This document shows positions 41,281 to 50,258 of a stretch of DNA of 64,000 bases, one piece after another. The position numbers and the translations under genes are program-made. Where the stretch lies: contig CP075497.1 in the NCBI GenBank assembly GCA_021613535.1, forward strand, positions 10,354,001-10,418,000, written 5' to 3'. The notes under the pieces are model-generated. The model saw only the letters and a program-made list of their open reading frames with translations, was not told where the DNA came from and ran no database searches. Each line of letters opens with the position of its first letter. Positions within the stretch are counted from its first letter, which is position 1. Source of the stretch: Adineta vaga (taxonomy: Eukaryota > Animalia > Rotifera).

Positions 41281-44200
41281 ATGGCTATCGAATCTGAAAA
41301 ACAAGTTTCACCATCAGACTCCATAATTGTTCGTACTGTTGATAATATTAAAAAAAGTGATAGTGACTCATGGAATTACCGTGGGCTGGAACTTTCAAAT
41401 GAGATGCTTGTTGTACTAATAAGTCATCCAAAGATTGATAAAGCTGCTGCTGCACTTGATGTTTCAATTGGTAGTTTAGCAGATCCAAGAGATGTTCCTG
41501 GCATTGCTCATTTCCTTGAACATATGTTATTCATGGGTAGTTCAAAAGTAAATCGAGTTTTACTTGTATTTGTTCGTATATAAAACTTTATACGCTTTTA
41601 GTATCCAGGTGAAAATGAATATTCTAAATTAGTCGAAGGTAATGGTGGTTATTCTAATGCTTTCACAAGTGGTGATCATACAAATTATTATTTTGATATT
41701 AATCCAAGTTTATTACCCGATGCCCTTGATGTGTATGTTGAATTAGGATTTTTTTTGTTGTGCCTTTGTAAATTTATTGATTGATTTTAGTTTTGCTCAA
41801 TTTTTCATTTCACCATTATTTGCTGCATCATCAACAGATCGCGAATTAGAAGCAGTTAATTCTGAATATGAAGGAAATCTATCTAAAGATGTCTGGCGTA
41901 TATCTCAATTAGAAAAATCGACATCAGATCCTGCCCATCCTTATTCAGGTTTTGCGATTGGTAATACTGAATCATTAAGAACTACGCCTAAACAACGTGG
42001 TATTGATATTCGACAAGTTCTTTTGGATTTTCATAACGCTCAATATTCTTCCAATCGAATGAGTTTAGCTGTAGTTAGCAATCGTATGAACTTCATTTTT
42101 GTCTTTTATGAAAATTGAAAATTATTTTATAATTTAGAATCCTTGGATGAACTTCAATCACTTGTGATTAAAAGTTTTAAAGATGTACCAAATAAGAAAT
42201 TAGAAAAACCCAAATATGCGGCTGATCCATACGGAGAAACGAAACGAAAAGTTTGTCAAAGAAGTTTTTCTTTATAAATCATTTTCTGTCTTTCCTTTCG
42301 CAGACAATTCTCTATGTTGTTCCGGTCAAAGAACATCGTCATTTAACAATCAATTGGGTTATACCAGATCATAAAGATTTATATTATTGTAATGTAAGTA
42401 TCGAACAGTTCATCAATCTTCTTTTTAGTTTCATCTCTTGAAGTATATTTTGATTTTTTTCAGCCTGAATCATATCTATCGCATTTAATTGGACATGAAG
42501 GTGATGGATCATTATTATCCTATTTAAAAAAATTGGGTTTGGCTATTGAATTAGTTTCTGGCGAAAAAAATTCAGCGCCAGGATTTAATTTCTTTACTGT
42601 TGATATAGAATTAACCATTGAAGGATTAAGTAAATCATATTTGATGATTGTGAAATGAGAAAATCTGTTCTATTTTTCTAAAACAAAAATAGATCACTGG
42701 GAAAAAGTCATTTATATTGTTTATCAATATATAGCTATGTTACGAAAAGAAAGTCCAAAAGAATGGATTTTTGAGGAATGCAAAGTAAGATAATGATGAT
42801 GAATTGAATTGATCGAATTCATAGAACATTTTTGTTGATATTTAGAATTTAAATGCCATGCATTTTCAATTTCGTGAAAAGGAACGACCGGATGATTTTG
42901 TTTCAAACTTAGCTGGTCGCATGCGGGTAATCTTATATGATAATATCCTTTCGGTTTATCATATGATCAAAGATACTTTATTGTTCTTTTAGGATTATCC
43001 ATTAACTGAATGTCTTTCTGGAGATTATGAAATGCGTGAATTTCGTCCGGATTTGATCATTGAAGCTTTAAATGAATATTTAATTCCAAGTAAAATGAGG
43101 TAATATTGATTTTACATCTTTTTTTTCTATTCTTCATTCAAATTCAAAAAAATACTTTTTTCGGTAGAGTTTTTCTTGCAAGTAAAGAATTTGTATCCAT
43201 TGCTACGGAAAAAGAAAAATGGTTTGGTACACAATATAAACAAGAATATCTACCTGAAGAATTGATCAAAGCTTGTGAAACATGTGAACTTCTTCCTGAA
43301 CTTCATTTACCAACACCAAACGAATTCATTCCAACAGATTTTCATATATTTTCCAAAGAAGCTCATACAACACGACCGCAACTACCAACGAAAATTAAAG
43401 TAGAAAAACAAGAATATTTACTTGATAACATCAAACATTGCTTTCATTGTTCAAGGAAAATGAATTCTATCGACTTTACTATGCAGCAGATACATTTTAT
43501 AAACTACCAAAAGCTTACGTTTATTTCGAATTTCGAAAGTAATTATTTATTTATTTCTGATCTATACAAAAAAATCTTTTTTCTTTTGAAATTTAGTCCA
43601 TTGGGAAGTGTTGATCCATTACATTCCAATATGAATGCACTTTATGTCGAATTAGTTGAAGATTCTTTAACAGAATTTGTTTATCCAGCTCAACTTGGTG
43701 GATTACAATATGAATTATCTGCTTTAAACTATGGAATTCAAGTAAATCAACTTTTTCTTTTCTTGTTAATTGAGATAGATTTAATTAATTCTTTGTTTTA
43801 GTTAACTCTTCATGGATTTAATCATAAAATTAAACAATTATTAGAAACAATTATCGATCGAATGGTCAATCTTGTAGTTAAACCTCAACGATTTGAAATA
43901 ATGAAAGAAAAAGTAAATTAAATGATTTCGTCTATTGAATATAAACGAATGTTCTACTCGATAGATTAAACGATCTTTACAAAACTTTCGTCGTGATGTT
44001 CCATATCAAATGGCACATTATGGTGTAACTTATTTAACAGCTGAACATCAATGGAATAAAGATGAATTACTTAGTTGTATCGATGGTAAATCTTTAAATA
44101 CATTCTATTCATCGTAAAATATTCATTCGTTCATTCTTTTACAGGTATTACAGTACAAGATATAGAAGCGTTTATACCACGAGTATTAACAAGATTTTTC

Positions 44201-45530
44201 ATCGATTCATTAATGTATGGAAATCTAACTAAAGAGGTAAGAAGCATATTGTAAAGAATACGAATGTCGAAGACAATTTTGTAATTTTTAGCATGCATTC
44301 GAATATATAACAATAATTGAAGATAAGTTTCATGCAAAACATTTCTATCAACCTTTATTTCCAAGCATGTGGTTTAATCAACGTGAATTAACATTACCGG
44401 ACGGTTTGTTTTCTATTTACTTCTCGTTTTTCTAACAACTTGTTTTCGTCATTAGGTTGCAATTATGCATATACAATGTTAAATGATGCTCATAAGTTAC
44501 ATGCAATTGAAATCTATCTTCAATGTTTCCAACAAACATTGGAAAATAATGCTTTATTAGAATTATTTTGTCATTTAGTTGATGAACGTTGTTTTGATCA
44601 ATTACGAACAAAAGAGCAATTAGGTTATATAGTTAGTTCAGGTGCACGTCGCTCACGTGGTGTACAAGGTTTTCGAGTTATTGTACAATCAGCAAGGAAA
44701 TTGGATCATGTTAATCAACGTATTGAATTATTTATTGATTCATTAAGAGTATGTGAATAATTTCATAAGATATTTCATTATATATATATAAACTTATTTG
44801 AAATAGGATTATATTGCACAAATACCAGATGAACTGTTTATAAAACAACGAGAAGGTTATATGGTTAAAAAAGTTGAAATTCCAAAAAAAATGCATAGTC
44901 AAGCAAATAAATTCTGGAGTGAAATAACTAATCATCAATTTTGTTTCGATCGACGTAATTTCAATTATTATAAATCTCTTATGATTTTCAATATTTTCTT
45001 CTCTTTTCTAGCTCAACTTGAAGTTGGAATAATTAAATCTATCGAACAGAATGATTTACTTCGTTTCTATGATCATTATATTTCAGCATGTTCTACTCAT
45101 CGTCGAAAATTATCTGTTCATGTTAATCCATCGCCACTAGCACTTCATGTTCCCAATGATCAAACAGCTAAAGAAAAACATCAAGATGAATTAACTGCGG
45201 CTACCGATGAAGATTTACCTTCAACAACTGAACAAGAAAATACGGAAAAAGTGACGACAGAAATCGTTAATGAATCAGTTAAATTAACAGAACAACCATC
45301 GATTGTTGATACAGTAACTCATACAGATTCAAAGGAACAAGTTATACCGGAAAAAGAACTCAAATTAACACCAGTAAATTTCGTTTTCTTCTTTGTTTCT
45401 AACTTTGTTTTTCGAATTTTTCTAGACGGATTGGATTGATAATGTTCATATATGGAAAAGTAAACTGCCATGTTATCCGCTTGCCCAATTCTACGAAAAA
45501 ATTGATGTACCTGTTCTGTGTAAATTATAA
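41281..45530 (+). CDS. IDE: Insulin-degrading enzyme (insulysin, M16A)
   Basis: GIAHFLEHMLFMGS (HxxEH), DRELEAVNSE, SHLIGHEGDGSLLS and FDQLRTKEQLGYIV; ends VLCKL* (PTS1-like). Confidence 0.95.
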
Positions 45531-45667
45531 ACAGAAATCTTTCATTTATATCATTTTTCTTTTTAATAACTTGCATTGTCCTTCAATATTCATTTAATCG
45601 AAAAAAAACGACTTTTTTTCAGATAAACAGGCTTTCTTTCTTTCTTTTCTATCTTATCTAAAAAAAA

Positions 45668-48977: not shown

Positions 48978-49184
48978 TTCGTTCTTTCGTTATTATAATA
49001 GTATTATTTTTCTTTCGTTTGTAAATATATTAAAAAAAAAGAAGCTACTGTTGAATGATAGAATCAATCCATTTCTTCTTTTAATCATAAGATTCTTCTC
49101 AATGATGCATATTTATATCTGCTAATTAAAAACTACTCAGGAAATGAACATTTCGATATTTATTTTTCAGATATTCTTTAAAAG

Positions 49185-50258
49185 ATGACTGACGATAAAA
49201 GTCGTTCATCTGTACCATCATCAGCATCGAATGGTACATCTAGTGCTAATAACAATACATCAACAAGCAATTCATCAAAATCAAACCAAAAAGATGTTAA
49301 ACCTAATTATACGCTTAAATTTACTCTCGCTGGTCATTTAAAAGCCGTCTCATCATTAAAATTTTCTCCATCAGGTGAATTACTTGCATCAGGTTCAGCT
49401 GATAAAACAATTAAATTATGGGGTGCACATGATGGTAAATGGGAAAAAACAATCAGTGGACATAAATTAGGTATATCGGATTTAGCATGGTCATCCGATA
49501 GTCGTTATTTAGTTAGTGCTAGTGATGATAAAACATTGAAGATTTGGGATGTTGCTAAAGCAAAATGTTTAAAAACATTAAAAGGTCATACGAATTATGT
49601 TTTCTGTTGTGATTTTAATCCTCAATCGAATTTAATTGTAAGTGGTTCATTTGATGAAAGTGTTAAGATTTGGGATGTAAGATCAAGTAAATGTCTACGA
49701 ACATTACCAGCTCATAGTGATCCAGTTACAGCTGTACATTTCAGGTAAAGAAGAAAAGTAAACGAATGAATTTATTTTCTTTTGAATTCTAGTCGAGACG
49801 GTACAATGATTGTTTCATCATCATATGATGGTCTTTGTCGTATATGGGATACATCGTCTGGCATGTGTTTAAAAACATTAATTGATGATGATAATCCTCC
49901 AGTTAGTTTCGTAAAATTCTCACCAAATGGTAAATATATTCTTGCAGCAACATTGGATAATACATTGAAATTATGGGATTATTCCAAAGGCAAATCATTG
50001 AAATTATATACAGGTCATAAAAATGAGAAATATTGTTTATTTGCCAATTTTTCTGTTACGGGTTCCAAATGGATTGTTTGCGGATCAGAAGATAATTGTG
50101 TTTATTTATGGAATTTACAAACAAAAGAAATTGTTCAAAAATTAGAAGGACATACAGATGTTGTTATGTGTTGTGCTTGTCATCCAAAAGAGAATATCAT
50201 TGCAAGTGGAGCTTTAGAAAATGACAAAACAATCAAATTATGGCGAAGTGACATTTAG
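49185..50258 (+). CDS. WDR5: WD repeat-containing protein 5
   Basis: [62 protein letters not shown] and [11 protein letters not shown]; one intron at about 49745-49792. Confidence 0.97.

Follow-up and report, generated by a model that had tools for sequence, protein, structure and literature searches.

Within a stretch of 64,000 nucleotides (nt) of the bdelloid rotifer Adineta vaga, referred to here as the window (positions 10354001-10418000 of contig 6 in the six-contig, 100.8-Mb assembly that was searched as the genome), four genes lie head to tail on the plus strand, and they are considered below as a candidate for an operon resolved by spliced-leader (SL) trans-splicing. The first is a multi-exon gene for an IDE-like M16 metallopeptidase (41281-45530, with its ATG at 41281 and its stop codon at 45528-45530), followed by a five-exon gene for a PSMB1-type proteasome beta subunit (45668-46548), the ten-exon MCMBP gene (46697-48977) and the two-exon WDR5 gene (49185-50258). 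From stop codon to ATG the spacers measure 137 nt (IDE to PSMB1), 148 nt (PSMB1 to MCMBP) and 207 nt (MCMBP to WDR5), and co-orientation with such short spacers is a general mark of SL-resolved operons. An earlier reading of the letters alone (the sequence-only reading) had set out this same-strand layout, and its coordinates and spacers proved exact. The identities come from Pfam, which was searched with single exons and returned Peptidase_M16 domains for IDE, Proteasome for PSMB1, MCM_bind for MCMBP and Beta-prop_WDR5 for WDR5. RNA contigs support all four genes, the introns listed for them are all spliced out in public RNA contigs, and the public protein I4U23_030516 [Adineta vaga] agrees with the MCMBP exons in the window. 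PSMB1, MCMBP and WDR5 are each single copy in the genome, which makes a comparison of synteny between ohnologues impossible, and IDE has a paralogue (66%) on contig 1.

The start of each of the three downstream genes is preceded by a plus-strand site of the form T-run-YAG/AT. Before PSMB1 this acceptor-like site is TTTTTTTCAG/ATAA (45613-45622), 45 nt from the ATG; before MCMBP it is TTTTTTTTAG/AT (46685-46694), 2 nt from the ATG; and before WDR5 it is ATTTTTCAG/ATAT (49162-49170), 14 nt from the ATG. The sequence-only reading had named these three acceptors, ending at 45622, 46694 and 49170, and all are present and conserved across five bdelloid genomes. What it overlooked is a second, distal site in the PSMB1-MCMBP spacer, TTTCTTTTTTTTTCAG (46600-46619), a T-run followed by CAG, which is stronger than the proximal site ending at 46694 and is kept in six lineages. 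Its statement that the first two spacers hold no convincing donor was right for both and too narrow, as a GT(A/G)AG donor sought in all three spacers was found in none of them.

Orthologous loci of four further bdelloids were reached from one MCMBP exon. In the same order of junctions, their spacers are 160, 140 and 141 nt in Adineta steineri, 146, 143 and 155 nt in Adineta ricciae, 1914, 149 and 620 nt in Rotaria magnacalcarata and 153, 139 and 628 nt in Rotaria sordida, with most junctions at 139-160 nt. A third lineage is represented by an RNA contig, L015, which covers the PSMB1-MCMBP spacer (141 nt) and neither of the others; this spacer measures 139-149 nt in all six lineages. The sites keep their places relative to the start codons: in the five genomes the PSMB1 site lies 40-56 nt from the ATG, including in R. 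magnacalcarata with its 1.9-kb spacer, the proximal MCMBP site lies 2-3 nt away (8 nt in L015), and the WDR5 site lies 13-14 nt away, spacers of 620-628 nt included. A Didymodactylos contig was too short and partial for a comparison of adjacency, contigs P0281 and P0282 are DNA fragments and not RNA, and a homologue search with WDR5 exon 1 showed no visible rotifer match among many conserved WDR5 proteins from other organisms.

In a gene-dense genome, such genes could be neighbours by chance, with spacing and AG sites that serve no function. Same-strand gene runs of some length are indeed frequent in the window, the string TTTYAGATA exceeds its frequency in shuffled sequence only about twofold, and TTTTTYAGATATG is barely enriched genome-wide (70 sites versus 49 for a control). 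Against this stands the fact that two genera and a third lineage conserve all three sites by position and the spacer at 139-149 nt, and chance proximity, already disfavoured on this account, is most improbable.

The genome is also equipped for trans-splicing. The leader (T)GCTTATTACAACTTACCAAGAG, whose 3' end reads ...ACTTACCAAGAG, occurs in at least 59 genome copies, versus 0 for the reversed control, and each of these SL RNA gene copies continues with GTAAAT and a conserved part of the intron. Most of the genes form head-to-head pairs, spaced at about 154 bp, and clusters (for example C6:10504265-10504441, C5:9884356-9925969 and C2:8684673-8691979), with one pair 86 kb past the window. They form one SL family only, in which several copies show single-base variants (TTAAAAC, AAATTACC, TTACGAAGAG). 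A scan of JGI metagenome contigs gave two environmental bdelloid mRNAs that begin with the leader; both come from other genes, and none from the four genes at this locus was among those contigs. SL RNA genes with a GTAAAT donor, together with the leader on environmental bdelloid mRNAs, are what an SL-resolved operon presupposes of its organism. In the A. vaga orthologues of the two SL-bearing mRNAs the junction falls at TTCTTCTAG/ATTTC and TTTCTTTCAG/ATCC, and the form of a leader acceptor is therefore T-run-YAG/AT, as it is at PSMB1, MCMBP and WDR5. Pouchkina-Stantcheva and Tunnacliffe (2005) reportedly described SL trans-splicing of monocistronic bdelloid genes, and are said not to have described operons; the leader and the acceptor form of such genes are the same as at this locus.

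Judged by their form, the three conserved sites are quite probably leader acceptors, since this form equals that of the two junctions verified by orthology, since a distance of 2 nt from the ATG at MCMBP suits SL addition and not a transcription start, and since 3' splice sites typically show such T-runs and an interchange of C and T at position -3. PSMB1, MCMBP and WDR5 are thus probably trans-spliced, and their sites would most likely accept the bdelloid leader GCTTATTACAACTTACCAAGAG.

Where the upstream transcripts end was judged from assembled Logan contigs, not reads, of four runs from four studies. In A. vaga each of the four genes is found on separate contigs. Those of IDE end at 45570-45590, those of PSMB1 at 46616 in three runs, 3 nt before the conserved CAG (46617-46619), and those of MCMBP at about 49043 and about 49067. 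Beyond 46616 there is hardly anything at PSMB1 depth, and the true end of PSMB1 lies within 46616-46646. Upstream RNA ends, approximate as contig ends are, therefore precede the acceptors at 45622, 46619/46694 and 49170. From RNA end to acceptor the distance is about 30-50 nt at the first junction and 3-78 nt at the second, so that a separate promoter would have hardly any space. Two loose contig ends, at 45650 and 46667, were considered as alternative joins and rejected: their matches are at loci on contig 3 that are unrelated to this one and have nothing but (CTTT)n or (TTC)n runs in common with it.

One contig crosses a spacer. L015 (SRR5248462) holds the fully spliced PSMB1 coding sequence, the 141-nt spacer and the fully spliced MCMBP coding sequence in one piece. 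Its source is a bdelloid with an MCMBP that shares 66-68% identity with Adineta as well as with Rotaria; RNA-derived sequence runs through the spacer in this lineage. A search with its PSMB1 coding region gave no match at E <= 1e-95, the exact product being without a match in the protein collection. Because six lineages keep the spacing constant, because L015 bridges the two genes and because the RNA upstream ends next to an acceptor, polycistronic transcription is best supported, within the locus, at PSMB1-MCMBP. The two genes would most likely be co-transcribed and parted by 3'-end formation beside the acceptor together with SL addition, and would then amount to a small operon like those of tunicates or nematodes. 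The sequence-only reading had proposed a polycistronic unit cut in this way; the SL genes, the conserved acceptors, the RNA ends and L015 speak for it, while SL letters on the transcripts and a bridging contig in A. vaga itself did not turn up. The layout, its conservation, the SL genes, the approximate RNA ends and the bridging contig of another species are matters of observation, and it is SL addition at the three genes and polycistronic transcription that we infer.

A number of points weigh against this proposal. Gene order is conserved, as the sequence-only reading suggested checking, but conservation extends to the flanking genes and is not special to the four: the order M1 peptidase-IDE-PSMB1-MCMBP-WDR5-TPR-ArgRS is the same in A. 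vaga and A. ricciae, and from IDE to ArgRS it also holds in Rotaria. With order kept so well past the four genes, synteny alone says little; the informative signals are the spacing, which is short and stays fixed, and the conservation of the sites. In A. vaga no contig bridges a spacer; 45591-45597 is uncovered, as is 46617-46791 in run X20 past the PSMB1 contig. The PSMB1 contig of that run starts at about 45638, in a (CTTT)n run downstream of both AGs of the first spacer, which may be an assembly break at the microsatellite or a real start. Even the bridging by L015 is not proof of a single transcript, as it could reflect read-through or DNA contamination.

No assembled contig of the four runs showed SL letters on PSMB1, MCMBP or WDR5, and this also bears on whether there is trans-splicing at the locus at all. 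The T-run-YAG/ATA sites might instead be initiator-like starts, the A of CAG being position +1, and the genes monocistronic and merely close together. WDR5 contigs begin at 49169 in the two runs of greater depth and at 49175 in a third, shallower one, as if at a true 5' end. Position 49169 is the point at which the genome, reading ...TCAG, ceases to agree with a leader that ends in ...GAG, and could just as well be the A of an initiator, so that this start fails to separate the two readings; the assembly graph would branch at 49169 if spliced and unspliced reads both existed. In the second spacer, TCAGTT (46616-46621), with which the conserved stretch after the distal T-run opens, can also be read as an initiator, and fits the arthropod initiator consensus. 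On the other side, if the site before MCMBP were a start, its distance of 2 nt to the ATG would mean a 5' untranslated region (UTR) of 4 nt. The motif, moreover, has the form that in two other genes is, by orthology, an SL junction, and extended T-runs with C or T at -3 are as expected of 3' splice sites. A further instance, TTTTAG/ATATG at window position 35174, was examined as another possible junction and rejected, since, judged by reading-frame continuity, it appears to be an ordinary intron acceptor in the M1 peptidase gene; as an apparent cis acceptor it favours a 3'-splice-site reading over a transcription start. That the genes lack trans-splicing is accordingly quite improbable.

The second-spacer stretch itself is a near-invariant block of 23 nt, TTTCTTAAACAAGAACTTTAAAC (46620-46642, plus strand), kept in six lineages. 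Its 14-nt core ACAAGAACTTTAAA is not a genome-wide motif (10 sites versus 25 for a control), and the block is therefore a locus-specific element. It may be a 5'UTR or outron element, a core promoter or a 3'-end element.

If the block after TCAGTT were a core promoter, it would suit a different view of the locus, in which the genes are compact and independent, each driven by a small promoter that overlaps the 3' end of the gene before it, with a short outron and the leader added at the acceptor, and in which RNA that crosses a spacer is incidental read-through. The Rotaria loci lend this view some support, as the acceptors are kept there despite spacers of 1914 nt (IDE to PSMB1, R. magnacalcarata) and 620-628 nt (MCMBP to WDR5, both species), and as about 90 nt before the WDR5 ATG are common to the two Rotaria species while the mid-spacer is not conserved. 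Upstream of the PSMB1 acceptor, however, R. magnacalcarata and R. sordida have no conserved sequence in common. PSMB1 contigs are 5-9x as deep as those of IDE, although contig depth is a poor measure; by the same poor measure MCMBP and WDR5 stand at 1.2-3.5x IDE. The next gene downstream of WDR5 (described below) shows that about 150-170 nt between genes can accommodate a promoter in this genome. Set against these points are the distances of only 30-50 nt and 3-78 nt from upstream RNA end to acceptor at the first two junctions, the constancy of the PSMB1-MCMBP spacer in six lineages and the bridging of these two genes by one RNA contig. Taken together, independent transcription of the genes is a possibility to be reckoned with, on the whole a doubtful one.

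It follows from the long Rotaria spacers and the deeper PSMB1 contigs that one promoter for all four genes is disfavoured, and transcription of the whole array from the IDE promoter is unlikely. A single four-gene operon is unproven and the weaker proposition, because of the Rotaria spacers of 1.9 kb and 0.6 kb, the much greater abundance of PSMB1 than of IDE and the promoter that fits a gap of about 150-170 nt. For the SL-resolved polycistron more narrowly drawn, it seems somewhat probable that at least one junction is truly operonic. The best explanation combines SL acceptors at three genes with an operon core of PSMB1-MCMBP, whose transcript IDE and WDR5 may or may not share, and we hold it with belief and doubt in about equal measure. 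That PSMB1-MCMBP, perhaps with the whole array, is an SL-resolved operon older than the split of the bdelloid families is put forward tentatively, with doubt somewhat the stronger.

The genes that flank these three look different from them. IDE and the TPR/TTC14-like gene that follows WDR5 have no T-run-YAG/AT site, and other conserved blocks lie upstream of them instead. The block before IDE (41171-41280, plus strand), conserved in three Adineta species and without an acceptor-like site, contains TTTTCTAC at 41221-41228 and is likely the conventional promoter and 5'UTR of a lead gene; IDE would then head the conserved co-directional cluster with an ordinary promoter region. The start region of the TPR/TTC14-like gene (50558-50600, plus strand, ATG at 50598) has TCGATCGA and TTTTCTAC, the latter at 50573, and lacks a conserved acceptor; contigs begin at scattered points within 50532-50552, and this gene likely has an independent promoter. 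The sequence-only reading had mentioned, without spelling it out, a recurrent promoter-like motif before these two genes, for which TTTTCTAC is the best match: it does occur before both and in none of the three spacers, but with 9 matches in the window versus 4.5 expected from shuffles it is only about twofold enriched. A second string common to both upstream regions, ACATCCAATAA, was discarded, its frequency being no higher than chance.

Several other features of the region deserve record. The WDR5 3'UTR (50259-50384, plus strand; RNA contigs end at 50379-50384) is near-invariant between Adineta and Rotaria and, being far more conserved than the adjoining spacers, may be an element of post-transcriptional control. 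In the MCMBP 3'UTR a block at 49010-49062, TTTCGTTTGTAAATATA...A-run...TTGTTGAAT, is likewise conserved between the two genera, and together with other 3' ends it suggests poly(A) signals of the type A(A/T)TA(T/A)A in bdelloids. Between IDE and PSMB1, R. magnacalcarata has about 1.8 kb of additional, apparently non-coding DNA (L018:5055-6968) without a counterpart in R. sordida or Adineta, and no transposon open reading frame or clear terminal repeats are recognisable in it. An open frame of 294 amino acids (aa) on the minus strand (39542-40423), between the M1 peptidase gene and IDE, has no Pfam match, and no A. ricciae gene is annotated there. An Rfam scan of 40000-52000 returned no known RNA family.

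Public gene models contain errors at the locus. In A. ricciae the models fuse PSMB1 and MCMBP into a product of 792 aa (L023:7001-10216), a fusion that also counts in favour of these two as an operon core, and in R. magnacalcarata they fuse MCMBP and WDR5 into one of 938 aa (L025:7001-11869); the A. vaga MCMBP model P0276 (501 aa) starts at an internal methionine and misses the first exons. Recognising arrays of this kind would improve bdelloid gene models, which are now mis-joined at this locus. The wider interest lies in the phylogenetic position of the group. According to PMC7986045 operons have not been reported in rotifers; none is described in the literature searched, and the A. vaga chromosome-assembly paper is silent on operons. 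A confirmed rotifer operon, if the proposal is true, would make Rotifera a further phylum among the few animals with SL-resolved operons. Rotifers and chaetognaths would then share operonic organisation, and the question of one versus several origins of SL trans-splicing and operons in Gnathifera would be reopened and made testable. The locus is, as yet unproven, a good candidate for a nematode- or tunicate-style operon in Rotifera.

How closely it resembles the known systems can be set out as follows. Operons of tunicates (Ciona, Oikopleura) and the SL1-type operons of Caenorhabditis elegans share with this locus a single SL type, unrelated housekeeping genes and very short gaps, and at PSMB1-MCMBP the upstream RNA ends a few nt from an acceptor (46616 versus the CAG at 46617-46619), the use of this AG being putative. 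They differ in that SL use at the acceptor and a polycistronic precursor are only presumed here; compared with tunicates in particular, the spacers of 137-207 nt exceed most intercistronic regions, and two acceptor-like sites compete in the second spacer. The SL2-type operons of C. elegans are similar in being co-directional, in the distance of about 100-150 nt from upstream 3' end to acceptor, as seen at MCMBP-WDR5, and in having an acceptor just before each downstream ATG, but in the present genome the SL genes form a single family with minor variants, a specialised SL2 is not evident, and no Ur element was identified at the locus. In the chaetognath Paraspadella gotoi, operons were given the working definition of co-oriented genes less than 250 bp apart with SL evidence, 18% of genes were reported to lie in them, the longest includes proteasome subunit genes, and an operon-specific SL was not found (PMC12460157). 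There the SL evidence consists of genome-wide read support, whereas the assembled contigs available here carry none on these genes. Chaetognaths are sister gnathiferans, and all three spacers of the A. vaga locus fall within the spacing of less than 250 bp by which their operons are recognised.

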